Positions 1-56,878 of a DNA stretch of 64,000 nt are shown here, in pieces (position 1 is the first letter of the stretch; each line of letters begins with the position of its first letter). A program made the position numbers and the translations under genes. Source of the DNA: Macrostomum lignano (taxonomy: Eukaryota); assembly GCA_002269645.1 (NCBI GenBank), contig NIVC01001153.1, positions 1-64,000 of the forward strand, given 5' to 3'. Under the pieces are notes generated by a model that made no database searches, was not told where the DNA came from, and saw nothing but the letters and a program-made list of their open reading frames with translations.

Positions 1-410
1 TCAGGCTAAACATCTATTAACACCCTAAGCGTAATGAATTGCATGCCAGGGACTAATTCAAGGAAGGCTTTTAAGAAATAAGCCGAAATGAATGATTATT
101 ATTAGTATAGCATCGAGATGGAGAATTCCGAGTCTGAATTTTCATGTACGTGACAAATTGCAAAAAAATGAGAACAATAGGAAGTCGAGTGGAATGATGC
201 ATGCGCGAACAAGGGCCACGGTGCCAGTCTGGACAGAAATTACTTGTAATTAGTTTGGCTACAGGTGAAATTTTAATATTTCCACAGATACTAGAATAAC
301 TAGATGGGCCACTCAGGCATATATACTTAGTAAACAGCTTTCTACTTCCAGTTCAGTAGCAAAGAAGAATACATAAGCTATTTTATAAAAAATAAAGGCA
401 GCTGAGATGA

Positions 411-693
411 CTTTGATAAGTTTAAAAGCCCAAGCTTGCAGGCATAAACAACTTGCTAATTGGTTCAGCAATAATGTACATTAGCCAGTCCACTGAAATG
501 AACATGGCAGCTTTAGGCAGGAATACCGAGAAAGGCCAATAAAAATTGGGGCGGAGGGGGACTTTGATAAGTTTAGAAGCCCAAGCTTGTAGGCATAAAC
601 AACTTTCTAATTGGTTCAGCAATACTGTACATTAGCCAGTCCACTGAAATGAACATGGCGGCTTTAGGCTGGAATACCGAGAAAGGCAATAAA
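411..693. repeat. ~151-bp tandem unit x2 (x3 in the mirror, ~55860-56292)
   Basis: ctttgataagttt...aagcccaagcttg recurs at ~411 and ~562. Confidence 0.85.
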
Positions 694-1517
694 CTTGGGC
701 CGGGGGGGGGTAGTGTGGAAAGGCGCGGCTAGAGGGTTTGAAGCCTGGGGTTAAGAGCCAATAAATGAGCCTTGGCTTTAAAGTACATAAAAAGCTTCTG
801 TTTAACTTACTACTGAACTGAAAGTAGCTAGACGCAAATGCGCTGAGTGGCCCATCCATCCAAATATCTGTGATATTTTCCAATACGGGTACCCGTAGTT
901 CCATTCCGTGCGATTCTCGCCAAAGACAAAGACCCCCCCAAGGCACAGGATCGGAGAGTGTAAACTAAACTGCCCTGAGAGAGAGTCTTAGGCCGTATGA
1001 ATAAAGTGAGCAATTGCTCAAACTCTTTGTGTGAGCGTGTACGACATCCGTACCTGTGTTTAGTATCCGCTTACGCGCACAGGGATCAACCAATGAAGAA
1101 ATCACCAATGTGTTTCTTTTTGCAACAGTAAAATAAACTCGCAACTAAATTCGAGTTTCTGAGCAAAACAATTATCAAACAATCTACTGTCAGTAGCGTA
1201 CCACCAAGCACAAGTTTATAGTTTATTTTATATATTTAAATAACAACTTTGGCAAACCCATCGCATACAGAACTGGATTGAAAATAATAATAGACTGTCT
1301 CACTGAGTACGCAGTACCGAAAACAGTAGTAGTCTAAGCACAGGTCCGACAAATATAAAATGCTGAGCCGTTCTGATTCAAAACAAACTACTCTTGTAGC
1401 AGTTAAAGTAGTAGTATGCATGCAGATTACCAGCTAAAAAGTATCACGCAGCATTAGGGAGAGCTTAATCGAGATTTTGAGCGTCGAGAGATGTTTAGAA
1501 AGGCGGGATTGAGGTGA

Positions 1518-2134
1518 GGGTTGGCGCCAAGAGGAGCTTAGGGGGTTGGCGCCAAGAGGAGCTTAAAGGGTTGGCGCCAAGAGAAGCTTAGAGGGTTGGC
1601 GCCAAGAGGAGCTTAGGGGGTTGGCGCCAAGAGAAGCTTAAAGGGTTGGCGCCAAGAGAAGCTTAGAGGGTTGGCGCCAAGAGGAGCTTAGAGGGTTGGC
1701 GCCAAGAGAAGCTTAGAGGGTTGGCGCCAAGAGAAGCTTAGAGGGTTGGCGCCAAGAGGAGCTTAGGGGTTGGCGCCAAGAGAAGCTTAAAGGGTTGGCG
1801 CCAAGAGAAGCTTAAAGGGTTGGCGCCAAGAGAAGTTAGAGGGTTGGCGCCAAGAGAAGCTTAAAGGGTTGGCGCCAAGAGAAGCTTAGAGGGTTGGCGC
1901 CAAGAGAAGCTTAGAGGGTTGGCGCCAAGAGAAGCTTAAAGGGTTGGCGCCAAGAGAAGCTTAAAGGGTTGGCGCCAAGAGAAGTTAGAGGGTTGGCGCC
2001 AAGAGAAGCTTAAAGGGTTGGCGCCAAGAGAAGCTTAGAGGGTTGGCGCCAAGAGAAGCTTAGAGGGTTGGCGCCAAGAGAAGCTTAGAGGGTTGGCGCC
2101 AAGAGAAGCTTAGAGGGTTGGCGCCAAGAGGAGC
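1518..2134. repeat. 25-bp minisatellite GAGGGTTGGCGCCAAGAGAAGCTTA, ~25 copies, just 3' of BUD23
   Basis: Direct reading of the sequence. Confidence 0.95.
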
Positions 2135-2184
2135 TGAGAGCGCATCAGCACTAACAAGTACCTGTCGTTAAAAACGCTGGGAGT

Positions 2185-5100
2185 TCAAAACCTTGGCTTC
2201 CTCTTTCGCCCAGTATACTTAGAATCAGACGGCAACGCTTTAGAGTCGGGGTTCTTACGCCGATACTGTTCTTTCTTGCGCATTATCCAAGCCTTGGAGC
2301 CTTTCCGCATAGGCTGTTGCTGTTTTGTAGAATGCCTACCGCCCGCCTCATCTTGTGCCGCTGGCATAGGCCGAGTACCGGCAGTGTCTAGCACTAAGAA
2401 ATGCTTCCTAGCCTTGGCCGATTCGGGATAATCAGTTACTAATCCTCCAGTAAATCCGCAGGACATCGCAGAGTTTAGTAATAATTGTAACTGCAATTCG
2501 TCTGCCGGGTAGAACTGCAGCACAGCTCTGGCGCCTACGGACATGCAGGCATACAGGCTGGTGAAAAAGGCTCGCTGTCTTCGAATGGGGTTGGCTGTGG
2601 ACCTGCGGAATGCCGCATTTTTGTGAGCGTCTAATGTTGCTTCTAGGGGGACTGTCTACCACAGCCGCTATTATCTACCTACAGCTGACTACCACAGCCG
2701 CTATTATCTACCTACAGCTGTCTACCACAGCCGCTATTATCTACCTACAGCTGTCTACCACAGCCGCTATTATCTACCTACAGCTGTCTACCACAGCCGC
2801 TATTATCTACCTACAGCTGACTACCACAGCCGCTATTATCTACCTACAGCTGTCTACCACAGCCGCTATTATCTACCTACAGCTGTCTACCACAGCCGCT
2901 ATTATCTACCTACAGCTGACTACCACAGCCGCTATTATCTACCTACAGCTGTCTACCACAGCCGCTATTATCTACCTACAGCTGTCTACCACAGCCGCTA
3001 TTATCTACCTACAGCTGACTACCACAGCCGCTATTATCTACCTACAGCTGTCTACCACAGCCGCTATTATCTACCTACAGCTGACTACCACAGCCGCTAT
3101 TATCTACCTACAGCTGTCTACTACAGAGTCGCTAGTATCTACCTACAGCTGTCTACCACAGCCGCTATTATCTACCTACAGCTGACTACCACAGCCGCTA
3201 TTATCTACCTACAGCTGTCTACCACAGCCGCTATTATCTACCTACAGCTGTCTACCACAGCCGCTATTATCTACCTACAGCTGACTACCACAGCCGCTAT
3301 TATCTACCTACAGCTGTCTACCACAGCCGCTATTATCTACCTACAGCTGTCTACCACAGCCGCTATTATCTACCTACAGCTGACTACCACAGCCGCTATT
3401 ATCTACCTACAGCTGTCTACCACAGCCGCTATTATCTACCTACAGCTGACTACCACAGCCGCTATTATCTACCTACAGCTGTCTACCACAGCCGCTATTA
3501 TCTACCTACAGCTGTCTACCACAGCCGCTATTATCTACCTACAGCTGACTACCACAGCCGCTATTATCTACCTACAGCTGTCTACCACAGCCGCTATTAT
3601 CTACCTACAGCTGTCTACCACAGCCGCTATTATCTACCTACAGCTGACTACCACAGCCGCTATTATTTACCTACAGCTGTCTACCACAGCCGCTATTATC
3701 TACCTACAGCTGTCTACCACAGCCGCTATTATCTACCTACAGCTGTCTACCACAGCCGCTTTTATCTACCAACAGCTGTCTATCACAGCCGCTATTATCT
3801 ACCTACAGCTGTCTACCACAGCCGCTTTTATCTACCAACAGCTGTCTACTACAGAGCCGCTATTATCTACCTACAGCTGTCTACTACAGAGCCGCTATTA
3901 TCTACCTACAGCTGTCTACTACAGAGTCGCTAGTATCTACCTACAACTGTCTACTACAGAGCCGCTATTATCTACCTACAGCTGTCTACTACAGAGCCGC
4001 TATTATCTACTCACAGCTGTCTACTACAGAGCCGCTATTATCTACTCACAGCTGTCTACTACAGAGCCGCTATTACCAAATACGTACCTATCCGAGTAAG
4101 CCAGCCACTGCAGAGCGGACACGCTGACAACGGCGTCAAAGCAACCAGCTCGGAACGGCAGGCCGTGGCCAATATCGCACCTGGCTAAGCCGCCTTCAAC
4201 TTCGTTCTCCAGCGCGATCTCCAGCATACTAGAGCTGATGTCAACGCCGAACCAGTTTAAACCGGCTTCGGTCAGAGCGGCACCGCTGATGCCGGAGCCG
4301 CAGCCAACGTCTAGCACGAGTAGAGAGGACCGAATTGTCGGATCCTCCGGTAGGCTGAGCAGCTCGATTGCTCGCTCTGACATTTCCGATTGGATTTGAA
4401 TGATGCGCGAGCTGCGAGGTGAAAGTGCGATTTTGTTGTGGGTAAACAGCTGGCGAAACTGCAGTGAGTAATTCTAGATATGTAAGTGCTTTTTGGTATC
4501 TAATCAGGCTTTTGTAAGCACGAAAAGAGCTGGAGCGCTACTGGTGAACTCGGGAAGCTACTGATGGACATCGGAGAGCTACTGATGGACTGGGAGAGAC
4601 CATGGACTGGGAAATACCATGGACTGGAAGAGCTACTGGTGGACTGGAGAGGCTACTGGTGGACTGGGGAAGCTACTGATGGACAGGGAAGCTACTGATG
4701 GACTCGGGAGGCTACTTGTGGACTGGGAAAGCTACTTGTGGACTGGGAAAGCTACTGGTGGATTGGAGAGGCTACTGGTGGACTGGGGAAGCTACTGATG
4801 GACAGGGAAGCTACTGATGGACTCGGGAGGCTACTGGTGGACTGGGAAAGCTACTGGTGGACTGGAAAAGATACTGGTGGACTGGAGAGGCTACTGGTGG
4901 GCTGGAGAGGCTACTGGTGGACAGGGAAGCTACTGATGGACTAGGGAGGCTACTGGTGGACTGGGAAAGCTACTGGTGGACTGGAAAAGATACTGGTGGA
5001 CTGGAGAGGCTACTGGTGGGCTGGAGAGGCTACTGGTGGGCTGGAGAGGCTAATGGTGGACTAGGAAAGCTACTGGTGGACTCGGGAAGCTACTGGTGGA

Positions 5101-5434
5101 CTTGGGAGGCTACTGGTGGACTGGGAAAGCTACTTGTGGACTGGAAAAGCTACTGGTGGACTGGGAAACATTCTCAGTTTTTTATCACCTTTTTCATCAC
5201 CTTAGGAATGATGAATTAACAATAACAGAACTACTAAAAGTTATAATTACTAATAAAATATTTATTAAAAACTTACTTTTGGGTGTACTTCTTTGCTTCT
5301 TTGTCATCATAGTACTAAAAAGTAGCAAAGGAAAAATATTATAATTCCCATATGAAATAATTAGAACATAAAGGCATTATTCTACAAAAGCATACCAATT
5401 CTGGTGGTAGACTTGATTCTGGTCTACTAGCCAT
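2185..5434 (-). CDS. BUD23: 18S rRNA (guanine-N7) methyltransferase BUD23/WBSCR22, 4 exons: 5434-5396, 5314-5277, 4411-4088, 2602-2185 (272 aa)
   Basis: Spliced product [44 protein letters not shown]...VLDVGCGSGISG...SVSALQWL...RAVLQFYP...KYTGRKRKPRF. GT-AG junctions keep frame. Confidence 0.93.
2654..4075. repeat. 33-bp minisatellite in BUD23 intron 3, ~43 copies (mirror 52730-53254, ~16 copies)
   Basis: Unit TCTACCACAGCCGCTATTATCTACCTACAGCTG. Confidence 0.95.
4535..5168. repeat. ~20-bp minisatellite in BUD23 intron 2 with higher-order blocks (mirror 51541-52275)
   Basis: Unit GACTGGGAAAGCTACTGGTG. Confidence 0.93.
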
Positions 5435-6419
5435 TGTGCAAATTGAGATTTAAATCTGAAATTATAATTTGTTAATTTATAAGTAATAGTTTCATTAAGT
5501 AAACCCATAGTTAAGATTTAATCCCTTTAGCATTGACCAATCTCTTAGCGAGAACACATGTATCATTACGAGAAAATTTCTGATCAAACAGTGCAAGTCT
5601 CATGAAAATTGGTTAAGCTATTTTTTCTCTAATCAATTGCAAGCAAGCAAGATTTTCATTTTTAGTATATAGGATGATATATCATTTATATCAAAAAGTT
5701 TTTGCTGTCTATATCAAGAAATTGCTAGAAGATTTAGCATATAAAATGTTGCCAGCAGACAAAAAGGCAGCAGACGAAATCACTGCACACCATATTATTA
5801 ATGATAGGCAATAGTAGCATAGCGAGGAATTTCAATTGTGGGGGGGGGGGGTTGGCCTGGCTGGCCATGCTTTATGCCATTGCCACTTTTGGTGCTGCAG
5901 GCACTTATTTTGGTGCCATAGTCTGGATCATGCTGGATGCATGCCTGAACAAGAATTGAATAATTACAAATGCATGCCAAAAAATGACTGTAGCCTATTC
6001 TTAAAACTACAATGGTATTGCAATAATAAATGACCTTTTTACATTGTGACAATAAATAACCATTTTTGAATAGCATAATGAACCATTTTGGCACATAATT
6101 TAGTTCATTTGTCTGCTTCTTTGACAATATTATTCACTGCAGAAAATTGATACATGCAAATTTTTGTTTAAATGCTTTATTACAAACTTTAAAAAACCTA
6201 GAAAGCTTGAAATTTTTGCTTAAAATGAACCTTTTCTCATCTTTTTTTTCTACTTCATAATAACTCTTTAGCATGATTCTATGAAGTGCATGCCAGGTAT
6301 GTACACACACTATTTTTTAGGAAGGATTCACGCCAACTGTGCATGCCTATTTTTGGCATGCAAGGCCAATGCACCCCAGAATTTTTAGGGGTATACTATA
6401 TGATCTGGAGTGTGGTTTT

Positions 6420-6650
6420 GGCACCGCAGGCACTTATTTTGGTGCTGCAAGCACTTATTCTAGTACCACAAGCACTTTTTTGGTGTTGCAAGCACTTATT
6501 TTGGTGTCACAAGCACTTATTTTGATGTCGCAAGCACTTTTTTTGGTGTCACAAGCACTTATTTTGGTGTTATAAGCACTTATTTTGGCATTGCAAGCAC
6601 TCATTTTGGCACTGCAGGCACTCATTTTGGTGCTACAAGCACTTATTGGC
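6420..6650. repeat. 21-bp degenerate minisatellite (mirror ~48965-49270)
   Basis: Unit ~GCACTTATTTTGGTGCTGCAA, with scattered copies near 5890, 7090 and 7450. Confidence 0.85.
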
Positions 6651-7116
6651 ATTCTTTTGTTTTATGATCCCTATTCCTTCCTAGGCACTTTTGTTATATG
6701 ATCCCTATGTAAAATATGCAGTCAAAGAATAGAAACCAGACAAAACATTATCCATGAGTCAAATGCATTGCATTAAGGCAGTTTCAATTGATATCTATTT
6801 GAAGTGGAGTTCAACCAAAGTGAGGCAATCAAACAAAGCCTCAATAAGATTCTTGGCAAAAGCAGAGACATCTCTAAATTCACTTTTTATATGATCATTT
6901 AAATGGAAGAAATGTATGCAAAGGGATCAGATAACAAAACTTGCATTTTAAAATAAATTTTCAATTTTGTAATATTATCATTCAAGTTAGAAATTTATTA
7001 GATGGGGATCGCATAAGATTGTATAATAAAAGTGCCATATTCTATAGGAAAAATGTAAAGGGATTGTAAAACAAAAGAATGCCCTTATTTTAGCGCCATA
7101 GACACTCATTTTAGCA

Positions 7117-7436
7117 CATACATGTGCAATAGTCGGCCGAGTTGGCCAATCCGGCTGACCGATTTGGTAGCCAAACAAGGAAGTCACAAAAATGCCCACC
7201 TAATAAATACCCAAGTAGGCCTAGTAGTACTAAGTAGTTGATGAGGCATTTTGACTTAATAAGACAGTCATAGTTACTCTTGCCGTTTACCCAAAGTAGC
7301 ATTAATTTTGCTTTACACTACTTACGCTAGGGTTTTTTTACATGTAATTGTAAGTTACATTTTTGGCCAAAAACTGTTGCATTTTGTTAAAACTAAGTCG
7401 CATGGCCGATTGAATTTTAGAGGTTGCACATGTATG
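7117..7436. mobile_element. 320-bp MITE, left arm only
   Basis: 13-bp perfect TIR CATACATGTGCAA/TTGCACATGTATG. TTTTAGCA on both sides (7109-7116, 7437-7444). Absent at the mirrored site (~48480-48540). Confidence 0.75.
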
Positions 7437-8531
7437 TTTTAGCACCATAGGCACTCATTTTAGCACTGCAGGCTCATTTAAGCACCGCAAGCCCTCAATT
7501 GCCTCATGGTTTTTGGTAACCACTGTGCCCAATCCCAACCCCTCCCCCCTAGGTGCCACTGATGGGCAATAGCCAATAGGCCTAACATTAGCCAAGTTGA
7601 TTAGGCCCCTATTGAGAATAGAAAATGTTTAAAAAAAACAAAATACATACATGCATATCAATCACTTTTGCTAAATAAATTAAAAAACTAGATGTACAAA
7701 TTTAAATGTTTTGGACTTGGTAAAATATCACTATCAATGCATAATCATTTTGTTTGCATGTCCTTTTTGCTAGGCTTATTAGCACTCTAAAAAACTTTGA
7801 AAATGAAGAATAAAATATAGCTATAAAATGAGATGTTTTTGTATACTATTAATCTAGTTTAATATAGTATTTCAGTTTATAAAATATATTTTATTAAAGG
7901 ATGACTAAAAAATCCAAGAATACTAATTATTGCAAAAGCAAAATGCAAAATTTTAGCTGCGCTATAGCAAAATTGGAATTTCGCGGCGGTGTAATCCCTT
8001 GCACTGACTGATAGAAACAACCAACAGCCCCAACAGGTAAACTTTAAAAACCCTTACTACGCATTTAGGGTAAAATCTTAGCCGTTTGGTATCTAAATCT
8101 AATCAACCAACGAGCATCATGCTCGGAGCATGTGGTCGGTGTCTTAGAAAATAGTGTAAAAATATAACATTCAAAAATGCACTATGCTAATTGATCTTCA
8201 CGTAGAACAATATTAAATATTTAAATGCCTCGCCATTATCGTAGATAGGCCTAGGTAACCTTTTTATTGCTAAAAACAGCAATAAAATAAAAATAATAAA
8301 GACAGAGTTTTACACACAAATTGGATTTGTTACGTATTATAATTATAATAAAACATTAACATTATCAATTATTTTATGGAGTTGGGCCTAGTTACCTAGT
8401 AAGCCTAGGTATGCTCAGTTATGTTTATTCGTACACACATTTAATATTATTATATTATCCAAGTTCGATGAGCGAACATTACACTATCTTATATCTAGAA
8501 TACAGATGGTAATTGGTAATGGTAATCAGGT

Positions 8532-8901
8532 CTGGGTTTTTTTAGGCCATACGGTAGCCACCGGCTACCCAATAAAGCCACTGGATTTGTGGCATCAGAG
8601 GCCAATCTGGCAAGCAACTTGAACCAAGGCAGTTGCCAATGATAAAACAGTCTGTCACATTTTATTACTGCTAAGATTGGCTTGGCTGAAAACCTGAAGC
8701 CTGAGCTGATTCGAGCATATTATTTTTTCATCAGTGCGTGAATATTGCGATGTTATAGAGCACCATATTTTTTGCTATGCACAAGCACTGGGACACTGAA
8801 ATAGGTCAGTTGCCAGTTGGCAACTGAGGATGGCAATTAGCAACTAGATTTTGAGCTTTAGTTGCCATTTGGCAACTGGATTTTGGATGAAAAAAACCCA
8901 G
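8532..8901. mobile_element. 370-bp MITE, left arm only
   Basis: 12-bp perfect TIR CTGGGTTTTTTT/AAAAAAACCCAG. 8-bp TSD AATCAGGT (8524-8531, 8902-8909). Single-copy empty site at 47349-47356. Confidence 0.88.
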
Positions 8902-9073
8902 AATCAGGTTATTATTCTGCTCATGACTGAATCAAAGACATAGTCAATACTAAATTCTAAAATAGTCATATTCATTGGCCTAGATAAGATGATAGCCTAG
9001 TCAGATAGCTTAGGCCCTAGGTACTTTCTACCTTTTGCACTTGTATTGTAGGCCCCTGCTATAGCAGCATTTG

Positions 9074-10363
9074 CAGGGTGCCTGCGCCCTCCTTTATTTC
9101 CTTTATCTCCTTTATTTGGCAAACCCCTCCTTTATCTCCTTCATCTCCTTTATTTAGAAGATTTTTGGGACTTTCTTTATTTTAGCCACTTTAGCTCCTA
9201 GCACTTGTTCTTGTACTTAATGTATTGTTACTTTAGCCTTTGGGTCCTTTTAAATAATCATTTTTAAGAAGACTATTTTCCTAGGCAAAGTTATATAGAA
9301 GAATAGTTTGTAAGTCTCAACAAAGTTTTGTATATATGATTAGTTAATAATTAAACAAACTTTAAAGCATCAACCCTAAGTTAGCCATAATATCAGATAG
9401 GGCCTATGTGAAACTGTGGAGCTAGAAATATACAAGTTTTTCTCAGGACTGCAAATTGGCTAAAAATATGATGTGATCAAAGCAGTCAACAAATAGGCCA
9501 CAGAATGAAACAACCATGAGAGTAGTATGTCCCTTGAGAGTATAACTGGGAGAGTACATGAGTACGACTGGCTTTTGAAGTAGGGATTAGCAGATTTTTA
9601 CCTCAAAGTCCAGATAAAAAATCTAGCTAGGCCCTAATGGCTGCAGGGGCAGATGAGAGTGGAAAGAAGAATGAATAGACAATAAGAGAAAGGATAAGAA
9701 AATAGATAAAATACAAGAGGAGACAGGAGGGTAAGGAGAGAGAGAGGGGGCAAAGAAAAGGGAGGAGGGAAGAGGAGTGCAAGGACAATAGAGGGGAAAA
9801 GAGACAAATAAGAGAGACAAGAAGAGAGAGGAGAGATAAGATAAGAGAGAGAAAAGATAAAGGAAAAGAGAGGAGAGAAGAGAGAGGAGAAATATGAGAT
9901 AAAGATAAGAGAGAAGAGATTAAAGAGAAGAGATAATAGGGAAAAGAGTTAAGAGAAGAGAGGAAATAGAGGGGATAGCAAAGGAAAGAGAAAAGAAGAG
10001 GGGAGAAATGAGAGGAAAGATAAGAGATCCCAGAGGGGATACAAGAAAGAGTAGAAAAAAGAATAGAGATAAGCAAGATAAGAGAAAAGAGAAGAAAATA
10101 GAGAGGACAAGAGAATGAGAAGAATAGAAAAGAGAAAAAAGGAGAGATAGAAGAGGAAAGAGAATAGAAGAGACAGAAAAAAGATAGAAGTTTCAGAGGA
10201 CCCAAAAGAAAGAGATGCAGAGGCAAAAGGCCAGAGTTTGCCTATACAGGCCTTAGACAGATATTGCCTGTCATTGTTACATTACCAAATTAAATCTCCT
10301 TTATTTTGGGATCAGTCAAACAGTCTCCTTAATTTTACTTTCTCAAAATGCGCGGGCATCTTG
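9074..10363. mobile_element. Putative old non-autonomous TIR element, ~1.3 kb (mirror 45829-47183)
   Basis: Imperfect 14-bp TIR CAGGGTGCCTGCGC vs CAAGATGCCCGCGC. CATTTG on both flanks. CTCCTTTATT motifs near both ends. Confidence 0.4.
9690..10230. repeat. Polypurine (GA-rich) low-complexity tract (mirror ~45985-46590)
   Basis: Almost exclusively A/G on the + strand for ~540 bp. Confidence 0.9.
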
Positions 10364-11114
10364 CATTTGTAAATTAAGTCTATAATAGGCCTCAGCCTAG
10401 GCAATATTTTTTTGGTGGATGACAAACTAACCAAATGTCACCTTATATATTTGGGAATATTTGCTTGGCTTTTGCACCTAGTGATGCACTTGTCATTTGT
10501 ATGCTTAGTTTAGTTGTGCTATGTTGGAAACTATCTAAATCTATATCATTGGCTAAAAAGTCCTTTGAAGCTCCTTTTCCCTTTTCCCAACACTCTTAGT
10601 ATTATATATTTAGTATATTTAGATGTATTTTCCAAAATCTTTATTTCTTTCTAATCTTAGTATTTATATTTAGTACATTTGTAGTTTAAATAGTAAACTA
10701 TATGTTCTTTTTATTTGACTCTTTAAAAAATAGGTAAGTCAAAATATTATTTGAACTTTTTTCAGTAGGTTCAGTTTGCTGTTTGGTTGTTTGGTCCTAT
10801 ATATATATTGGGCCTAGGTTGGTTTAGAATTGAAAGAAGCAAGCTTTTATATTGACTATATCTTTTAAAGTTTTTTCATATCCAGATAAAAATTTGCAAT
10901 GATTGTGCATGAGGTTTCAACCTCATATAGTCTATTGCCAGTGTCTCAAGTAAAATGATGTTTAAAAAAAGCACCAGCTTTGAAAACCAATCAGCTATTA
11001 GCCTAAGATATCAGTATCCTTGTGAGTTTTGGTATCAAAGCTTCCCTTTAAACCATGATGTAATACTAACTCTTCCTTTGATGCTTGGCCTACCAACATC
11101 CTCCAGTTAATTAA

Positions 11115-13800
11115 CCCTTGACATCCAAGCAATTCCCCTGTGAGCCTTGACATCTCAGCAATTCCCTGTGAGCCTTGAAATCTCAGCAATTCTCCTGTGA
11201 GCCTTGCCATCTCAGCAATTCCCTGTGAGCCTTGAAATCTCAGCAATTCCCTGTGAGCCTTGAAATCTCAGCAATTCTCCTGTGAGCCTTGCCATCTTAG
11301 CCATTCCCCTGTGAGCCTTGACATCTCAGCAATTCCTCATCACGGCCTTGATATCTCAGCGTCAGCGATTCCCCTGTGAGCCTTAGCCTAGACATCTCAG
11401 CAATCCCCCCTGTGGCTGTGAGCCTTAACATCTCAGCAATTCCCTGTGAGCTTTGCCATCTTAGCCATTCCCCTGTGAGCCTTGACATCTCAGCAATTCC
11501 CTGTGAGCCTTGACATCTCAGCAATCCCACTTGTGAGTGCCTTGACATCTCAGCAATTCCCCTGTGAGCCTTGACATCTCAGCAATTCTCCTGTGAGCCT
11601 TGCCATCTCAGCAATTCCCTGTGAGCCTTGAAATCTCAGCAATTCCCTGTGAGCCTTGCCATCTTAGCCATTCCCCTGTGAGCCTTGAAATCTCAGCAAT
11701 TCCCTGTGAGCCTTGAAATCTCAGCAATTCCCTGTGAGCCTTGACATCTCAGAAATCCCCCCCCCTGTGAGCCTTGACATCTCAGCAATCCCCCCTGTGG
11801 CTGTGAGCCTTAACATCTCAGCAATTCCACCCGTTAGCCTTGACATCTCAGCAATCCCCCCCCCTGTGAGCCTTGAAATCTCAGCAATTCCCTGTGAGCC
11901 TTGACATCTCAGCAATCCCCCCCCCTGTGAGCCTTGACATCTCAGCAATCCCCCCCTGTGAGCCTTGACATCTCAGCAATCCCACCTGTGAGTGCCTTGA
12001 CATCTCAGCAATTCCCTTGTGAGCCTTGACATCTCAGCAATTCTCCTGTGAGCCTTGCCATCTCAGCAATTCCCTGTGAGCCTTGAAATCTCAGCAATTC
12101 CCTGTGAGCCTTGCCATCTTAGCCATTCCCCTGTAAGCCTTGACATCTCAGCAATTCCCCATCACGGCCTTGATATCTCAGCGTCAGCGATTCCCTGTGA
12201 GCCTTGACATCAGCGATTCCCCTGTGAGCCTTAGCCTAGACATCTCAGCAATCCCCCCTGTGGCTGTGAGCCTTAACATCTCAGCAATTCCACCCGTGAG
12301 CCTTGACATCTCAGCAATCCCCCCCTGTGAGCCTTGACATCTCAGCAATCCCCCCCTGTGAGCCTTGACATCTCAGCAATCCCCCCCTGTGAGCCTTGAC
12401 ATCTCAGCAATCCCCCCTGTGAGCCTTGACATCTCAGCAATCCCCCCCCTGTGAGCCTTGACATCTCAGCAATCCCCCCCTGTGAGCCTTGACATCTCAG
12501 CAATCCCCCCCCCCTGTGAGCCTTGACATCTTAGCAATCCCCCCTGTGAGCCTTGAAATCTCAGCAATTCCCTGTGAGCCTTGACATCTCAGCAATCCCC
12601 CCTGTGAGCCTTGACATCTCAGCAATCCCCCCTGTGGCTGTGAGCCTTAACATCTCAGCAATTCCACCCGTGAGCCTTGACATCTCAGCAATCCCCCCTG
12701 TGAGCCTTGACATCTCAGCAATCCCCCCCTGTGAGCCTTGACATCTCAGCAATCCCCCCCTGTGAGCCTTGACATCTCAGCAATCCCCCCCTGTGAGCCT
12801 TGACATCTCAGCAATCCCCCCCCCCTGTGAGCCTTGACATCTCAGCAATCCCCCCCCTGTGAGCCTTGACATCTCAGCAATCCCCCCCTGTGAGCCTTGA
12901 CATCTCAGCAATCCCCCCCCCTGTGAGCCTTGACATCTCAGCAATCCCCCCCCTGTGAGCCTTGACATCTCAGCAATCCCCCCCTGTGAGCCTTGACATC
13001 TCAGCAATCCCCCCCCCTGTGAGCCTTGACATCTCAGCAATCCCCCCCTGTGAGCCTTGACATCTCAGCAATCCCCCCTTGTGAGCCTTGACATCTCAGC
13101 AACCCCCCCCTGTGAGCCTTGACATCTCAGCAATCCCCCCCCTGTGAGCCTTGACATCTCAGCAATCCCCCCCTGTGAGCCTTGACATCTCAGCAACCCC
13201 CCCCTGTGAGCCTTGACATCTCAGCAATCCCCCCCCTGTGAGCCTTGACATCTCAGCAATCCCCCCCTGTGAGCCTTGACATCTCAGCAATCCCCCCTTG
13301 TGAGCCTTGACATCTCAGCAATTCCACCCGTTAGCCTTGACATCTCAGCAATCCCCCCCCCTGTGAGCCTTGAAATCTCAGCAATTCCCTGTGAGCCTTG
13401 ACATCTCAGCAATCCCCCCCCTGTGAGCCTTGACATCTCAGCAATCCCCCCTGTGAGCCTTGACATCTCAGCAATCCCACCTGTGAGTGCCTTGACATCT
13501 CAGCAATTCCCTTGTGAGCCTTGACATCTCAGCAATTCTCCTGTGAGCCTTGCCATCTCAGCAATTCCCTGTGAGCCTTGAAATCTCAGCAATTCCCTGT
13601 GAGCCTTGCCATCTTAGCCATTCCCCTGTGAGCCTTGACATCTCAGCAATTCCCCTGTGAGCCTTGACATCTCAGCAATCCCCCCCCCCCTGTGAGCCTT
13701 GACATCTCAGCAATTCCCCTGTGAGCCTTGACATCTCAGCAATTCCCTGTGAGCCTTGACATCTCAGCAATTCCCCTGTGAGCCTTGACATCTCAAGCAA
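11115..13800. repeat. ~27-34-bp satellite CTGTGAGCCTTGACATCTCAGCAAT(C)n, ~2.7 kb
   Basis: Fixed core plus a variable C run. Recurrent variant blocks indicate higher-order structure. Confidence 0.97.
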
Positions 13801-13955
13801 TTACCCTAAGAGCCAGAGCATTTTTGCAATGGCCCTCATACGCCACAAATCCATATACTAAAAATCAAACCTGAACTTGTATTTCTAATATAATTTCTAT
13901 ACAATCACTGACAGCAACTCATATTGATCGATTGATGCTAAAATAGACAGCAGCC

Positions 13956-19434: not shown

Positions 19435-19696
19435 GGAATGCCGTGCTACTAAAAGTAGGCAAAGTTTAAATTTTGGTGGGATTTGTTCCTGTGCCAAAAC
19501 AACAAGTTGTAAAATTGTAACTTTAACAACTTAATAATGATTTGCTTGTATTTTTGAAGTATAACCGTTGCTAATTTAGTCTGAACTATGCATTTGTTCC
19601 TTTGCGGCCTGTTATTGACTGTGATGAGTCAGTCTTGTTACTTATTTTATTTCACTTTTTCCGTTTAGCATTGCTTAAGCTAGGGGAGGTCTTTCC

Positions 19697-20006
19697 TAAC
19701 CCCTCAGATCATTCAGTGCCTGCTGCCCCTCCCCTCAGATCCTTCAGTGCCTGCTGCCCCTCCCCTCAGATCCTTCAGTGGCTGCTGCCCCTCCCCTCAG
19801 ATCCTTCAGTGCCTGCTGCCCCTCCCCTCAGATCCTTCAGTGGCTGCTGCCCCTCCCCTCAGATCCTTCAGTGGCTGCTGCCCCTCCCCTCAGATCTTTC
19901 AGTGGCTGCTGCCCCTCCCTTCAGATTCTTCAGTGCCTGCTGCCCCTCCCCTCAGATCCTTCAGTGCCTGCTGCCCCTCCCCTCAGATCCTTCAGTGGCT
20001 GCTGCC
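19697..20006. repeat. 31-bp minisatellite interrupted by the mini-Polinton; last unit at ~22815-22845 (mirror 33453-33880, ~4 more units)
   Basis: Unit TGCCTGCTGCCCCTCCCCTCAGATCCTTCAG. Confidence 0.93.
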
Positions 20007-27625: not shown

Positions 27626-28320
27626 CTTGTTTGTACGAATGTTTTTAAGATGTTAGCGCATTAGACTGTGCGGTTGTACTTTTACTGGGTGTATTTAATG
27701 GCCTCTAATTAGGCTTTGAATTATCTTGAATAGCTACGGTTTTCTAGTGCTCTCCGTTGTAGTTCTCCAATATTCTATACATGTAGTGTCTGTTTGGAGT
27801 TCTCTAGCATCCATATTAAGGTTCGTGGAAACAACCCACTAGTGGTTCTAGCGAATGTTATTTGAAGACTCAAGCGACTGTAATGCAACTGTTGAGTCAC
27901 GAGCGCATCACGTGCGAATCGTAAGAGTCGTCCAAAAGCCGTTGCGTTAGAAATTTTCTACTAACTCAAGTAGACTAAATAGATCGAGTTATTACACGTA
28001 TGCTAGTAAACTGTGCAAGTCGATTCTAGTTCATAAAGTGATATGTTGAATGCTTTTTTCCTGAGCGTATTTAGCCACTCGGCAGATTTTGAAGCGAAAA
28101 AAAAAACTCGGCGGGCAATTCGCTCGCGGGCAAAATGCACTGCGGGCAAATCTCGACGGGAAAATCGTCTGCGGGCAGTTCTCATGGACCTGACTCTGAG
28201 ATGCTTCTTGGCCTAGGTACCGTTTTTTATCAATAGTGTTCTCTTAATGTCCCTTGCATTGTTTGGGTAATCTAGTATCTCTCAAGCGTCCCTTGTTACA
28301 AACTGCACTGTCTAAGTCTT

Positions 28321-48000: not shown

Positions 48001-50917
48001 TCTTGGATTTTTCAGTCATCCTTTAATAAAATATATTTTATAAGCTGAAATACTATATTAAACAAGATTAATAGTACACAACAACATCTCATTTTATAAC
48101 TATATTTTATTTTTCATTTTCAAAGTTGTTTACAGTGCTAATAAACCTAGCAAAAAGGACATGCAAACAGAATGATTATGCATTAATAGTGATATTTTAC
48201 CAAGTCCAAAACATTTAAATTTGTACATCTGGTTTGTTAAATTTATTTAGCAAAAGTGATTGATATGCATGTATATATTTTGTATTTTAAACATTTTCTA
48301 TTCTCAATAATCAACTTGGCTAATGTTAGGCCTATTGGCCATTGCCCATCAGTGGCATAGCCTATCAGTGGCTACTAGGGGGGCCGGGGGGGGGGGGGGG
48401 GGTTGGGTGCAGTGGTTACCAAAAACCATGAGGCAATTGAGTGCCTGTGGCACTAAAAATAAAATGAGATCTTGCGACGCTAAAATGAGTGCTTGCGGCA
48501 CAAAAATGAGGGCCTATAGTGCCAAAATAAGGGCATTCTTTTGTTTTACAATCCCCTTACATTTGTCTTATAGAACATAGCACTTTTATTATACAATCTT
48601 ATATGATCCATACCTAATAAATTTCTAACTTAAATGATCATATTACAAAATTTATGAAAAGCCCAAGTTTTGTTATTTGATCCCTTTGCATACATTTCCT
48701 CCATTTAAATGATCATATAACAAAAGTGAATTTAGAGACATCCCTGCTCTTGCCAAGAATCTTGTTGAAGCTTTGTTTGATTGCCTCATTTTGGTTGAAC
48801 TTCACTTCAAATAGATATCAGTTGAAACTGCCTTAATGCAGTGCCTTTGACTCATAGATAACATTTTGTCTGGTTTCTATTCTTTGACTACATCTTTTAC
48901 ATGGGGATCGTATAACAAAAGTGCCTAAGAATAGTGATTGTAAAACAAAAGAATGCCAATAAGTGTTTGCGGTGCCAAAATGAGTGCTTACAGTGCCAAA
49001 ATAAGTGCCTGTAGTGCCAAAATGAGTGCTTGTGACGCCAAAACAAAGCCTATGATGTCAAAATAAGTGCCTGGCACCAAAAAAATGCTTGTGGCACCAG
49101 AATGAGTGCTTGCAACACCAAAATAAGTGCCTGTGGTGCCAAAATGAGTGCTTGTGATGCCAAAACAAAGCCTATAATGCCAAAAAAGTGCCTGCACTGC
49201 CTGGCGCCAAAAAATGCTTGTGGCACCAGAATGAGTGCTTGCGACACCAAAATAAGTGCCTATGGTGCCAAAACCACACTCCAGATCATATTGTATATCC
49301 CCAAAAATTCTGGCATGTATTGGCCTTGCATGCCAAAAATAGGCATGCACAATTGGCGTGTATCACTCCTAAGAAAATAGTGTGTATGTATACCTGGCAT
49401 GCACTTCATAGAATCATGCTAAAAAGTTATTGTAAAGTAGGGCCTAGAAAAAAAAGATGAAAAAAGGTTCATTTTAAGCAAAAATTTCTAGCTTTCTGGG
49501 TTTTTTAAGCTTGTAATAAAGTATTTAAACAAAAATTTGCATGTACCAATTTTCCGCAGTGAATAGTATTGTCAAATAAACAGAAAAATGAACTAAATTA
49601 TGTGCCAAAATGGTTCATTATCCTATTCAAAAAAGGTTATTTATTGGCACAATATAAAAAAGGTCATTTATTATTGCAATACCATTGTAGTTTTAAGAAT
49701 AGACTACAGTCAATTTTTTGGCATGCATTTGTAAGTATTCAATTCTTATTTGGGCATGCACCCAGCATGATCCAAACTATGGTGCCAAAATTAGTGCCTG
49801 CGGCGCCAAAAGTGGCAATGGCATAAAACATGGCCAGCCAGGCCAACCCCCCTTCCCGCAATTGAAATTCCTCATTACGTCACTATTGCCTATCATTAAT
49901 AATATGGTGTGCAGTGATTTGGTCTATTGCCTTTTCGTCTGCTGGCAGACAAAATAGCTATCCTACAGAATTATTTGTTAAATTCACTGCATGCACATTT
50001 TTAGCTATTAACATGCATTTTTTCCAAAAATGAATATTCTCATTATGCCAACATTTTAGAAGTGTTTATAAATGTCTATATTTGTTAGCTCAAGGGCTGG
50101 ACAAACCTATTGAGGTAGCACAATCTATGTTGAGGCAGAAGGTTGTCCACCAGCTATTTTTAAGTGGAAAGCACTTTATTCGTAATATTTGCAGCTTAGC
50201 AGCACCCCTCTCCTTAAAGCCCCAGAGCTAATAACTAATTTTCGCCATAGACACATTTTTAGCCAGTGACATCAGCGTACAAATTTGAAATTGCATAATC
50301 AGTAATAGTCATTAAAATTTGAAAAAAAAACTAAAAAACCTGGAAATTACAATAATGGTTAAGTTGCAACCTCCACAAATGGAATTTTAATGACAAAACA
50401 CTTCTAAGATGTTGGCATAATGAAAATATTCATTTTTGGCAAGTTTCATGTCAATAGCTAAAAAATATGAGTATAGTGAGTTTATCAAATGATTCTGTAG
50501 GATAGCCCAAAAAGTATATAGGTGTTCAGTCAATATTAAATATATAGATAGCTAGAAATATTGCTAGGTATATTAGGCATTTAAAAAGATATTTTTATAG
50601 ATATGTAACAACCAAAAATAGGCATTTAAGACAAAGATTTAGTTAGGCATTTATTGTTTGCAGTTAAATTATTTATAGTATATGAGTAGACATGTAATGT
50701 AGTAGCAATAGCACTGGTATTTGTAAATGAAAATGGGTAGGAAACATGCAAAAAGGGTACCTAGCTTTGAGGAGTCTGGTAAAACAGATTCAATTGGTAT
50801 AAGACAGGTAATAACAGTATATTATATATAGCATTTTGTCTAACTTTTCATGTATTTGAATTCATTTACTTCTTCAATCTGTTGCTTTTTGTAGAGGATA
50901 TCAGGATTGTTATGTGT

Positions 50918-51066
50918 TTCATTCAAACAACATGTTTCGCCTAACATTAGGCATCTTCAGGTTGTTAGAAATTTAATAATGCTAATGTTGGAAATCTGAA
51001 ATATTAAATAAATTTCCAACAACCTGAAGATGCCTGATGTTGGGCGAAACATGTCATTTGAATGAA
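50918..51066. ncRNA. Inverted pair of minimal hammerhead-ribozyme-like motifs (Penelope-like-element type)
   Basis: + strand CTGAAGA-T-GCCTGA tg TTGGGC-GAAAC-ATGT-C (51024-51055). - strand CTGAAGA-T-GCCTAA tg TTAGGC-GAAAC-ATGT-T. ~58-bp arms, ~33-bp spacer. Confidence 0.6.
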
Positions 51067-51294
51067 AAAAATGCTTGCAATTTCCTAAGTTTATTGTATA
51101 AATATGCTTTTCTAGTTCCTGAAACTATTTTAAGCAAAATTTTACATGCTAAATATTCTAGCAATTTCTTGATATAGACAGCAAAATCTTTTTGATATAA
51201 ATGATATATCATCTTGACTATTACTTTACTTAATGAAACTATTACTTATAAATAAACAAATTATAATTTATGATTTAAAATCTCAATTTGCACA

Positions 51295-53715
51295 ATGGCT
51301 AGTAGACCAGAATCAAGTCTACCACCAGAATTGGTATGCTTTTGTAGAATAATGCCTTTATTTTCTAATTATTTTATATGTAATTTTAATATTTTTCCTT
51401 TGCTACTTTTTAGTACTATGATGACAAAGAAGCAAAGAAGTACACCCAAAAGTAAGTTTTTAATAAATATTTTATTAGTTTTGTTATTGTTAATTCATCA
51501 TTCCTAAAATGATAAAAAGGTGATAAAAAACTGAGAATTTTTCCCAGTCCACCAGTAGCTTTTCCAGTCCACAAGTAGCTTTCCCAGTCCACCAGTAGCT
51601 TCCCGAGTCCACCAGTAGCTTCTCTAGTCCATCATTAGCCTCTCCAGCCCACCAGTAGCCTCTCCAGTCCACCAGTTTCTTTTCCAGTCCACCAGTAGCT
51701 TTCCCAGTCCACCAGTAGCCTCTCGAGTCCATTAGTAGCTTCCCTGTCTATCAGTAGCTTCCCCAGTCGACCAGTAGCCTCTCCATTCCACCAGTACCTT
51801 TTCCAGTCCATGTTCTTTCCCAGTCCATCAGTAGCTCTCCCCTGTCCATCAGTAGCTTCCCGAGTTCACCAGTAGCTTCCCTAGTCCACCATTAGCCTTT
51901 TCAGCCCACCAGTAGCCTCTCCAGTCCACCAGTATCTTTTCCAGTCCACCAGTAGCTTTCCCAGTCCACCAGTAGCCTCTCCATTCCACCAGTACCTTTT
52001 CCAGTCCATGTTCTTTCCCAGTCCATCAGTAGCTCTCCCCTGTCCATCAGTAGCTTCCCGAGTTCACCAGTAGCTTCCCTAGTCCACCATTAGCCTCTTC
52101 AGCCCACCAGTAGCCTCTCCAGTCCACCAGTATCTTTTCCAGTCCACCAGTAGCTTTCCCAGTCCACCAGTAGCCTCTCCAGTCCACCAGTAGCTTTTCC
52201 AGTCCATGGTCTTTCCCAGTCCATCAGTAGCTCTCCCCTGTCCATCAGTAGCTTCCCGAGTTCACCAGTAGCGCTCCAGCTCTTTTCGTGCTTACAAAAG
52301 CCTAATTAGATACCAAAAAGTACTTACATATCTAGAATGACTCACTGCAGTTTCGCCAGCTGTTTACCCACAACAAAATCGCACTTTCACCTCGCAGCTC
52401 GCGCATCATTCAAATCCAATCGGAAATGTCAGAGCGAGCAATCGAGCTGCTCAGCCTACCGGAGGATCCGACAATTCGGTCCTCTCTACTCGTGCTAGAC
52501 GTTGGCTGTGGCTCCGGCATCAGCGGTGCCGCTCTGACCGAAGCCGGTTTAAACTGGTTCGGCGTTGACATCAGCTCTAGTATGCTGGAGATCGCGCTGG
52601 AGAACGAAGTTGAAGGCGGCTTAGCCAGGTGCGATATTGGCCACGGCCTGCCGTTTCGAGCTGGTTGCTTTGACGCCGTTGTCAGCGTGTCCGCTCTGCA
52701 GTGGCTGGCTTACTCGGATAGGTACGTATATAGCGACTCTGTAGTAGACAGCTGTAGGTAGATAATAGCGACTCTGTAGTAGACAGCTGTTGGTAGATAA
52801 AAGCGGCTGTGGTAGACAGCTGTTGGTAGATAAAAGCGGTTGTGGTAGACAGCTGTAAGTAGATAAAAGCGGCTGTGGTAGACAGCTGTAAGTAGATAAT
52901 AGCGGCTGTGGTAGACAGCTGTAAATAGACAAAAACGGCTGTGGTAGACAGCTGTAGGTAGATAATAGCGGCTCTGTAGTAGACAGCTGTGAGTAGATAA
53001 TAGCGACTCTGTAGTAGACAGCTGTAGGTAGATAATAGCGGCTCTGTAGTAGACAGCTGTAGGTAGATAATAGCGGCTCTGTAGTAGACAGCTGTAGGTA
53101 GATAATAGCGGCTGTGGTAGACAGCTGTAGGTAGATAATAGCGGCTGTGGTAGACAGCTGTAAGTAGATAAAAGCGGCTGTGGTAGACAGCTGTAAGTAG
53201 ATAAAAGCGGCTGTGGTAGACAGCTGTAAGTAGATAATAGCGGCTGTGGTAGACTAGAAGCAACATTAGACGCTCACAAAAATGCGGCATTCCGCAGATC
53301 CACAGCCAACCCCATTCGAAGACAGCGAGCCTTTTTCACCAGCCTGTATGCCTGCATGTCCGTAGGCGCCAGAGCTGTGCTGCAGTTCTACCCGGCAGAC
53401 GAATTGCAATTACAATTATTACTCAACTCTGCGATGTCCTGCGGATTTACTGGCGGATTAGTAACTGATTATCCCGAATCGGCCAAGGCTAGGAAGCATT
53501 TCCTAGTGCTAGACACTGCCGGTACTCGGCCTATGCCAGCGGCACAAGATGAGGCGGGCGGTAGGCATTCTACAAAACAGCAACAGCCGATGCGGAAAGG
53601 CTCCAAGGCTTGGATAATGCGCAAGAAAGAACAGTATCGGCGTAAAAACCCTGACTCTAAAGCGTTGCCGTCTGATTCTAAGTATACTGGGCGAAAGAGG
53701 AAGCCAAGGTTTTGA
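51295..53715 (+). CDS. BUD23: BUD23 mirror copy, exons 51295-51333, 51414-51451, 52398-52721, 53298-53715 (272 aa, intact)
   Basis: Same exon sizes (39/38/324/418 nt), the same motifs and canonical splice sites. Confidence 0.93.
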
Positions 53716-53764
53716 ACTCCCAGCGTTTTTAACGACAGGTACTTGTTAGTGCTGATGCGCTCTC

Positions 53765-55036
53765 AGCTCCTCTTGGCGCCAACCCTCTAAGCTTCTCTTG
53801 GCGCCAACCCTCTAAGCTTTTCTTGGCGCCAACCCTCTAAGCTCCTCTTGGCGCCAACCCTCTAAGCTTCTCTTGGCGCCATCCCTTTAAGCTCCTCTTG
53901 GCGCCAATTCTCTAAGCTCCTCTTGGCGCCAACCCTCTAAGCTTCTCTTGGCGCCAACCCTCTAAGCTTTTCTTGGCGCCAACCCTCTAAGCTCCTCTTG
54001 GCGCCAACCCTCTAAGCTTCTCTTGGCGCCGTCCCTTTAAGCTCCTCTTGGCGCCAATTCTCTAAGCTCCTCTTGGCGCCAACCCTCTAAGCTTCTCTTG
54101 GCGCCAACCCTTTAAGCTTCTTTTGGCGCCAACTCTTTAAGCTAGCGCCAACCCTCTAAGCTCCTCTTGGCGCCAACCCTCTAAGCTGGCGCCTACCCTC
54201 TAAGCTCCTTTTAGCGCCACCCTCTAAGCTCCTCTTGGCACCAACCCTTTAAGCTCCTCTTGGCGCCAACCCTCTAAGCTTCTCTTGGCGCCACCCTCTA
54301 AGCTCCTCTTGGCGCCAACCCTTTAAGCTTCTCTTGACGCCAACCCTTTAAGCTTCTTTTGGCGCCAACCCTCTAAGCTTCTTTTGGCGCCAACCCTCTA
54401 AGCTTCTCTTGGCGCCAACTCTTTAAGCTCCTCTTGGCGCCAACCCTCTAAGCTCCCCTTGGCGCCAACCCTTTAAGCTTCTTTTGGCGCCAACCCTCTA
54501 AGCTTCTCTTGGCGCCAACCCTTTAAGCTCCTCTTGGCGCCAACCCTCTAAACTTCTTTTGGCGCCAACCCTCTAAGCTTCTCTTGGCGCCAACTCTTTA
54601 AGCTCCTCTTGGCGCCAACCCTCTAAGCTCCTCTTGGCGCCAACCCTCTAAGCTTCTCTTGGCGCCAACCCTCTAAGCTCCTCTTGGCGCCAACCCTCTA
54701 AGCTCCTCTTGGCGCCAACCCTCTAAGCTTCTCTTGGCGCCAACTCTAAGCTAGCGCCAACCCTCTAAATTTTCTTAGCGCCAACCCTCTCAGCTCCTCT
54801 TGGCGCCAACCCTCTAATCTCCTCTTGGCACCAAACCTTTAAACTACTCTTGGCACCAACCCTTTAAGCTCCTCTTGCCGCCAGCCCTCTAACTTTTCTT
54901 AGTGCCAACCCTCTAAGCTCCTCTTGGCGCCAAACCTTTAAACTACTCTTGGCACCAACCCTTTAAGCTCCTCTTGCCGCCAGCCCTCTAACTTTTCTTA
55001 GTGCCAACCCTCTAAGCTCCTCTTGGCGCCAACCCT
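53765..55036. repeat. Mirror 25-bp minisatellite, ~50 copies, more degenerate
   Basis: Direct reading of the sequence. Confidence 0.95.
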
Positions 55037-56878
55037 CACCTCAATCCCGCCTTTCTAAACATCTCACGACGCTCAAAATCTCGATTAAGCTCTCCCTAAT
55101 GCTGCGTGATACTTTTTAGCTGGTAATCTGCATGCATACTACTACTTTAACTGCTACAAGAGTAGTTTGTTTTGAATCAGAACGGCTCAGCATTTTATAT
55201 TTGTCGGACCTGTGCTTAGACTACTACTGTGTTCGGTACTGCGTACTCAGTGAGACAGTCTTATTATTTTCAATCCAGTTCTGTATGCGATTGGTTTGTT
55301 AAAGTTGTTATTTAAATATACAAAATAAACTATAAACTCGTGCTTGTTGGTACGCTACGGACAGTAGTTTTTTTGATAATTGTTTTGCTCAGAAACTCGA
55401 ATTTAGTTGCGAGTTTATTTTACTGTTGCAAAAAGAAACACATTGGTGATTTCTTCATTGGTTGATCCCTGTGCGCGTAAGCGGATACTGAACACAGGTA
55501 CGGATGTCGTACACGCTCACACAAAGAGTTTGAGCAATTGCTCACTTTATTCATACGGCCTAAGACTCTCTCTCAGGGCAGTTTAGTTTACACTCTCCGA
55601 TCCTGTGCCTTGGGGGGGTCTTTGTCTTTGGCGAGAATCGCACGGAATGGAACTACGGGTACCCGTATTGGAAAATATCACAGATATTTGGATGGATGGG
55701 CCACTCAGCGCATTTGCGTCTAGCTACTTTCAGTTCAGTAGTAAGTTAAACAGAAGCTTTTTATGTACTTTAAAGCCAAGGCTCATTCATTTATTGGCTC
55801 TTAACCCCAGGCTTCAAACCCTCTAACCGCGCCTTTCCACACTACCCCCCCCCGGCCCAAGTTTATTGCCTTTCTCGGTATTCCAGCCTAAAGCTGCCAT
55901 GTTCATTTCAGTGGACTGGCTAATGTACATTATTGCTGAACCAATTAGAAAGTTGTTTATGCCTACAAGCTTGGGCTTCTAAACTTATCAAAGTCCCCCC
56001 TCCGCCCCAATTTTTATTGCCTTTCTCGGTATTCCAGCCTAAAGCTGCTATGTACATTTCAGTGGACTGGCTAATGTAAATTATTGCTGAACCAATTAGC
56101 AAGTTGTTTATGCCTGCAAGCTTGGGCTTCTAAACTTATCAAAGTCCCCCCTCCGCCCCAATTTTTATTGCCTTTCTCGGTATTCCTGCCTAAAGCTGCC
56201 ATGTTCATTTCAGTGGACTGGCTAATGTAAATTATTGCTGAACCAATTAGAAAGTTGTTTATGCCTGCAAGCTTGGGCTTTTAAACTTATCAAAGTCATC
56301 TCAGCTGCCTTTATTTTTATAAAATAGCTTATGTATTCTTATTTGCTACTGAACTGGAAGTAGAAAGCTGTTTTACTAAGTATATATGCCTGAGTGGCCC
56401 ATCTAGTTATTCTAGTATCTGTGGAAATATTAAGAAATTTCACCTGTAGCCAAACTAATTACAAGTAATTTCTGTCCAGACTGGCACCGTGGCCCCTTGT
56501 TCGCGCATGCATCATTCCACTCGACTTCCTATTGTTCTCATTTTTTGCAAATTGTCACGTACATGAAAATTCAGACTCGGAATTCTCCATCTCGATGCTA
56601 TACTAATAATAATCATTCATTTCGGCTTATTTCTTAAAGCCTTCCTTGAATTAGTCCCTGGCATGCAATTCATTACGCTTAGGGTGTTAATAGATGTTTA
56701 GCCTGAAGAACTCTATTAACCTCTAGCTGTTTTTGTAGGCAGTACGGGTAAAATTCATGTGAAACGAAGCTTATACCCAGCAGCTGTTTTATTGGCTTCC
56801 ACTGCATTTTTCGTCATTTCTTTAATCCTATGGAGTAATTAAATTATTAAGTATTCAATTACTCCACGCACTTGTGGT

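Follow-up and report, generated by a model that had tools for sequence, protein, structure and literature searches.

The first 64 kb of scaffold NIVC01001153.1, in assembly GCA_002269645.1 (Mlig_3_7) of Macrostomum lignano, hold a giant mirror image. The same four genes are present twice, in opposite orientations, on either side of a scaffolding gap. This stretch of 64,000 nucleotides is referred to here as the window. The scaffold physically ends at window base 1, because window positions 1–15434 match NIVC01001153.1:1–15434 at 100% identity; further loci confirm that window and scaffold coordinates are the same. The left arm (1–24761) belongs to a 28,320-bp Canu contig at the scaffold terminus, of which it forms the stretch homologous to the right arm, and it redundantly duplicates the end of another scaffold, NIVC01002550.1. 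It is followed by an unmirrored tail of the same contig (24762–28320), on whose minus strand lie the 3′ two-thirds of a RIG-I-like receptor gene. Next comes the single N run of the window (28321–28704), an SSPACE scaffolding gap of 384 N whose length is an estimate and which sits between two separately assembled contigs. The right arm (28705–56706) is the first 28 kb of a 112-kb main contig and probably represents the copy of the locus from another subgenome. The outer flank of the right copy (56707–64000) bears a rhodopsin-like G-protein-coupled receptor (GPCR) gene on the plus strand and is without a mirror in the window. The order of the locus is GPCR, BUD23, RNF34-like, RPP30, RBMX2, RIG-I-like helicase. 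Rfam and tRNA scans gave no matches.

Both BLASTN and unique shared 18-mers place left positions 1–24761 in inverted collinearity with the reverse complement of 28705–56706. A single inverted diagonal is formed by 12,509 unique 18-mers, where about 0.01 would be expected by chance. A preliminary description, made from the sequence letters, had reported this duplication. Its extent is correct, and the start of the right arm moves from 28704 to 28705. The suggestion that the repeat might continue beyond base 1 is moot, base 1 being the end of the scaffold.

The four genes are intact in both arms, as had been proposed. BUD23 has identical protein products in the two arms (10 synonymous and 0 non-synonymous differences). 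The left copy (2185–5434, minus strand) has four exons and encodes 272 amino acids with the Pfam domains Methyltransf_11 and WBS_methylT, exactly the annotated product; the right copy (51277–53715, plus strand) adds a 6-amino-acid annotated 5′ extension. The RNF34/rififylin-like E3 ligase is open in both arms. Its left copy (13956–15707, plus strand) is annotated with 475 amino acids and matches FYVE, RNF34L-like_3rd and RING in Pfam, and the intron of the right copy (37874–40405, minus strand) holds 20 copies of a 48-bp unit instead of 3. The first exon shows three amino-acid replacements (four non-synonymous nucleotide changes), and the repeat array of the gene shows a few more, together with an in-frame length difference of 12 amino acids. 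This array is an 18-bp coding repeat, 'PPEAAQ', with 13 units on the left (14819–15052) and 11 on the right (38529–38726), in frame in both. The three exons of RPP30 are nucleotide-identical between the left copy (17578–19434, plus strand; exons 17578–17755, 18310–18596 and 18940–19434; 319 amino acids; Pfam RNase_P_p30) and the right copy (34147–36003, minus strand). The left model matches the annotated protein from residue 4 of that protein onwards, and every junction is GT–AG. RBMX2 is a single open reading frame (ORF) of 337 amino acids on the left (22943–23956, plus strand) and 344 on the right (29476–30510, minus strand), the latter having one additional 7-amino-acid repeat. The underlying 21-bp coding repeat, 'GSRDGHP', has 7.2 units on the left (23508–23659) and 8.2 on the right (29773–29945), again in frame. 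The gene was named from homologues with 60–67% identity over the RRM domain; the homologue search returned distant matches only, and a metagenome scan with RBMX2 found no close relative. Neither RBMX2 ORF was on record in exact protein look-ups, and RBMX2 is annotated with 335 amino acids and a 21-nt pseudo-intron. Exact look-ups failed because the annotation removes part of the coding repeats as pseudo-introns, in the 475-residue and 335-residue models alike.

Other open frames of the window include a 221-codon ORF (20213–20878, minus strand), intact on the left, whose right mirror (32584–33244, plus strand) has a 2-nt indel near the 3′ end. It has no Pfam match and is not recorded as a gene, as judged by an exact look-up of the 205-amino-acid ORF at 20213–20830; it may be a gene, the remnant of a transposon or an open frame that arose by chance. 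The GPCR gene consists of two coding ORFs on the plus strand (60557–61156 and 61901–62938), and the intron between them is occupied by a 30-bp minisatellite (61255–61759). A 28-bp minisatellite family (CCAGATCCTCAGTTGCTG..GCCAGCCTC) flanks the gene at 57014–58010 and 63035–63624, 5 kb apart. The NCBI record has no gene annotated in the GPCR region (60557–62938).

The arms are not one sequence written twice, and on this point too the first reading of the letters was right. They differ in substitutions, in minisatellite copy number and in insertions found in one arm only. Substitutions number 290 in 15,535 aligned non-repeat bases (1.87%), and the single-nucleotide polymorphism (SNP) rate across all aligned columns is 1.99%. 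The substitutions are spread very unevenly: the inner 11 kb have a rate of 0.39% and the outer 14 kb one of 3.76%, with about 0–0.1% at 16–20 kb, about 1% at 14–16 and 21–23 kb, and 3–7.5% at 5–11 kb. The overall difference rises to 42% once unalignable insertions and differences in repeat number are included. Each arm has thirteen minisatellite arrays, with strongly unlike copy numbers: 2.9 copies on the left versus 19.9 on the right for the 48-bp unit, 87.6 versus 145.6 for a 31-bp unit, 42.7 versus 15.3 for a 33-bp unit and 25.1 versus 52.1 for a 25-bp unit. Such arrays fill most of the introns of BUD23 (2652–4075; 33-bp unit, 43 versus 15 copies), the RNF34-like gene (14534–14673; 48-bp unit, 3 versus 20 copies) and RPP30 (17880–18240; 31-bp unit, 11.5 copies), and their mirrors. 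Much of the 42% overall divergence is due to minisatellites of this kind. A left-only segment of 395 bp (8532–8926) is bounded by terminal inverted repeats, CTGGGTTTTTTT...AAAAAAACCCAG, with AATCAGGT as its 8-bp target-site duplication. It is a miniature transposon (MITE), possibly hAT-like, that was inserted after the copies split, and it corresponds to the MITE named in the preliminary description. A segment of 1235 bp (49921–51155) is present on the right only.

The supposed centre of the mirror is formed by contig ends. The two arms lie on different Canu contigs, and their sole link is the 384-N gap. Read as the reverse complement, the right contig runs to '...gtctgagtaaattcaagtta' and then directly into N; at the corresponding place the left contig reads '...gtctgagtaaatttcaagtta' up to 24761 and 'atatattgactg...' from 24762 onwards. 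Homology between the arms extends, with no visible decay, to the last base of the right contig before the gap. The inner 'boundary' is therefore a contig end and not a biological edge. The last 760 bp of the right contig contain six indels, of one base in homopolymers, and one substitution, a pile-up that resembles the state of poorly polished long-read contig ends. The two sides of the gap are discontinuous, as neither a reading frame nor homology spans it. On its left lies non-coding sequence upstream of a minus-strand helicase exon. On its right lies the intergenic tail downstream of RBMX2, the homologue of which is found 3.56 kb leftward, at 24761.

The intervening 3,559 bp of the left contig have no mirror. 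This tail encodes, on the minus strand, the Hel2i (26973–27644), Hel2 (26284–26838) and C-terminal (25777–26280) domains of the RIG-I-like receptor, with Pfam matches to RIG-I_C, Helicase_C and RIG-I_C-RD. The introns are short (about 85–135 nt) and have clean GT..AG ends, and 577 codons are open. From the sequence, open exons with clean splice sites are as expected of a live gene. The receptor is divergent, with only 25–27% identity to vertebrate DHX58/DDX58 in a homologue search that returned distant matches only. The ATP-binding Hel1 domain is lacking in the tail, and no helicase domain was found in the last 676 bp before the gap (27645–28320). With about 690 nt of coding sequence, the missing domain is too large for 676 non-coding bases and 384 N. 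The annotation of scaffold 1153 accordingly carries a truncated 484-amino-acid model of the helicase, versus a 1004-amino-acid model with DEAD/ResIII on scaffold 679 (NIVC01000679.1). A palindrome without any spacer, centred near 26,733, was also considered; it is ruled out, as 24762–28320 encodes one continuous minus-strand gene.

Further copies of the locus exist elsewhere in the assembly. An identical BUD23 protein is encoded on scaffolds 1153, 2550 and 679, the right arm being the fourth annotated copy. The number of distinct copies is exactly three: the left one, which is the same as that on scaffold 2550, the right one, and that on scaffold 679. Over 13.8 kb the left contig and NIVC01002550.1 are separated by 39 gap openings, against three substitutions. 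Outside repeats, about 8,350 bases show no substitution at all, and the differences are 1-bp indels. At diagnostic sites, defined as positions where the two arms differ, NIVC01002550.1 has the left-type allele in 108 of 108 readings. Window positions 1–22947 correspond to NIVC01002550.1:~79,000–102,118, and that scaffold terminates at the counterpart of left position 22,947. The left contig is thus redundant over its overlap with the end of scaffold 2550, beyond which it reaches a further 5.4 kb, into the helicase gene. With the same haplotype assembled twice in this interval, the 1-bp indels gauge the residual consensus error. Outward of the equivalent of window base 1, NIVC01002550.1 continues for more than 70 kb, through the same GPCR region as that beyond the right arm. 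The GPCR-flank homologue of the left-type copy is found there, on scaffold 2550, and is absent from scaffold 1153.

The third copy (NIVC01000679.1:144439–182832) contains no N and is collinear with left-contig positions 8150–28102, passing the 24761/24762 position without a break. It encodes the 1004-amino-acid helicase with DEAD/ResIII, RIG-I_C, Helicase_C and RIG-I_C-RD; this third copy of the receptor gene occupies positions 18560–22010 of the stretch fetched from scaffold 679 (L018) and extends past the fetched locus. Scaffold 679, too, continues from BUD23 into the same GPCR region. Its alleles are a mosaic. Left-type alleles occupy 56 of 58 sites across BUD23 and the intergenic region, a tract of about 12 kb in which five mismatches separate it from scaffold 2550 over 7,250 bases. 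Right-type alleles prevail in the inner 5.7 kb beside the boundary, at 8 of 9 diagnostic sites, and also mark the 48-bp repeat array and the GPCR flank; further differences are private to scaffold 679. The mosaic may stem from homeologous exchange, from loss of heterozygosity between subgenomes or from a Canu contig that is chimeric. The gap-free run of scaffold 679 through the 'centre' stands whichever of these is the cause.

The published history of the assembly provides the setting for these observations. Mlig_3_7 is a Canu assembly of PacBio reads that was polished with Pilon; SSPACE 3.0 then scaffolded it with 29 paired-end, mate-pair and 454 libraries. Its 5,980 contigs became 5,270 scaffolds, which amounts to only about 710 joins. 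The genome is about 500 Mb in size and the assembly 764 Mb, and 180–312 Mb of the latter lie in duplicated blocks. M. lignano (line DV1) is a neopolyploid with three subgenomes: S belongs to the small chromosomes, and L1 and L2 correspond to the two versions of the large one (Molecular Biology and Evolution 2023, PMC10733133). According to the same study, three-copy blocks make up 69.6% of Mlig_3_7, matching the three subgenomes, many four-copy blocks show only three-fold read depth, and 36% of the assembly by length is subgenome-chimeric (PMC10733133). SNP divergence was given as 1.91% between L1 and L2 and 2.41% between L and S, rising to 32–36% overall with long insertions (PMC10733133). 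A literature search for a chromosome-level assembly of M. lignano found none.

Taken together, the assembled sequences point strongly to a false join. The arms are very probably two of the three homeologous or haplovariant copies of one single locus, mis-joined head-to-head across the gap, and it can be held with considerable confidence that the palindrome is not real. The 384-N gap is the only evidence for the head-to-head adjacency. Contig structure, the redundancy with scaffold 2550 and the linear third copy all suggest that this adjacency would be found on no chromosome. Canu assembled the copies of the locus into separate contigs. The 28.3-kb contig, repeating the end of NIVC01002550.1, is joined in inverted orientation, over a gap estimated at 384 bp, to the start of the 112-kb contig bearing the copy of another subgenome. 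The divergence between the arms (1.87–1.99% SNPs, 42% with indels) matches that published for the subgenomes (1.91–2.41% SNPs, 32–36% overall). Copies are linear through the supposed centre in two of three cases. Several marks of a false duplication are present: diverged subgenomes, an assembly larger than the genome, arms on separate contigs, a short arm at a scaffold terminus, a divergence equal to the genome-wide subgenome value, and a left sequence that is also placed elsewhere. The preliminary description had already favoured an assembly explanation, on the ground that the right arm begins directly behind the gap, and separate contigs, redundancy, the linear copy on scaffold 679 and subgenome-level divergence all bear it out. 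Its other proposal, a palindromic amplicon of RNA-processing genes, finds no support.

Several points weigh against a false join. The verdict is drawn from assembled sequence, and scaffold 679, being a mosaic, could prove to be a chimeric contig and so offer no independent testimony. The orientation of the contigs is a further difficulty. Cross-mapping of homeologous mate pairs onto the left helicase tail predicts parallel, overlapping contigs and not head-to-head ones, and no inverted repeat able to mislead orientation was found in 24000–28320. SSPACE thus had some set of links in favour of the head-to-head orientation. As a speculation, if one library had been entered in the wrong orientation, the gap would be expected to lie near 0, not far from the observed 384.

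A real chromosomal palindrome would have arms of at least 25 kb around a 3.2–3.9-kb spacer made of a truncated helicase gene, and four genes duplicated on one chromosome. It would account for the choice of a head-to-head join with a small positive gap, which paralogue cross-mapping does not predict, and for the intact BUD23, RNF34-like, RPP30 and RBMX2 genes of both arms. Gene conversion from arm to arm near the centre could also yield the low inner rate (0.39%) beside the high outer one (3.76%). Such a palindrome is nevertheless highly improbable. No sequence crosses the centre, the arms being on separate contigs, and no inner boundary can be defined where homology is cut off by a contig end. 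The left-type copy belongs to scaffold 2550, which reaches more than 70 kb further outward, so that arms of over 100 kb would be needed (scaffold 2550 and the rest of 1153), which by coincidence would be just the expected subgenome paralogues. There is no copy beyond the ploidy expectation, with three distinct copies for three subgenomes, and a palindrome would lack a third-subgenome copy of its own. The third copy runs linearly through the centre with a complete helicase gene. A helicase fragment as old as the 2–4% divergence of the arms should show stops or frameshifts, yet 577 codons are open and the introns clean, in a neighbourhood whose neutral sequence has diverged by several per cent. 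It is just as doubtful that the junction exists on one chromosome, for example the large fused MLI1, where post-duplication fusions would have inverted homeologous segments together. If that were true, the palindrome would exceed 100 kb and its arms would be as old as the genome duplication.

A rearrangement confined to the subgenome of the right arm would create no palindrome and is likewise improbable. In this case a segment resembling the helicase tail would lie inverted beside RBMX2, for example at a large-chromosome inversion breakpoint, and reads mapping to the left tail would have pulled the whole left contig into the scaffold. The structural difference between subgenomes would then be real. 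Both the head-to-head orientation with its small positive gap and the break of the right contig exactly where the arm meets the helicase tail would be explained, and inversions between large and small chromosomes are reported for M. lignano (PMC10733133). The arrangement is parallel in two of the three copies, however. Scaffold 679 is right-type beside the boundary, yet continues in parallel. The breaks also have a simpler cause in a region that is hard to assemble, as scaffold 2550 ends only 1.8 kb away. A false join of subgenome copies accordingly remains the preferred reading.

The biological weight of the case is small, as the four housekeeping genes are not amplified beyond the known three-subgenome structure. 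Its value lies in quality control. One concrete and very probably false join is located in a widely used reference, at the NIVC01001153.1 gap 28321–28704, and one redundant contig is identified, of which positions 1–22,947 repeat the end of NIVC01002550.1. The case shows how false joins mimic palindromes. Users of Mlig_3_7 who design knock-outs, count gene copies or deduce rearrangements should distrust inverted duplications that straddle scaffold gaps.

The human Y-chromosome palindromes P1–P8 are examples of genuine ampliconic palindromes. Like the NIVC01001153.1 locus, they have long inverted arms around a short unique spacer, and the genes of both arms are intact. Single clones or reads pass right through a true palindrome, whose arms gene conversion keeps more than 99.9% identical and whose boundaries are defined. 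At the NIVC01001153.1 locus the centre is a gap, the arms are 2% apart in SNPs and about 42% apart overall, and a contig end takes the place of a boundary. Other parallels come from draft assemblies. The 'palindromes' of the 2013 draft of Adineta vaga (AV13) were no longer present in a chromosome-level assembly, and the wrong scaffolding of phased haplotypes was named as their origin (Simion et al. 2021, PMC8494291). As in AV13, the genome has diverged haplotypes, allelic or homeologous copies lie inverted on one draft scaffold, both arms retain intact genes, and the adjacency comes from scaffolding alone. The two cases differ in ploidy, A. vaga being a diploid with a tetraploid past and M. 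lignano a neopolyploid with three subgenomes. They also differ in proof: the AV13 artefact was demonstrated by a chromosome-level assembly and Oxford Nanopore (ONT) reads, and the present one is deduced from contig structure, redundancy and the linear third copy. A further counterpart is the set of S/L subgenome-chimeric scaffolds of Mlig_3_7 itself (PMC10733133). There, 5-kb windows were sorted into classes by their k-mers, and head-to-head joins are not among the features described. The assembly is nonetheless the same, and so, very probably, is the cause; subgenome paralogues are mixed in one scaffold in both, and the divergence figures agree.

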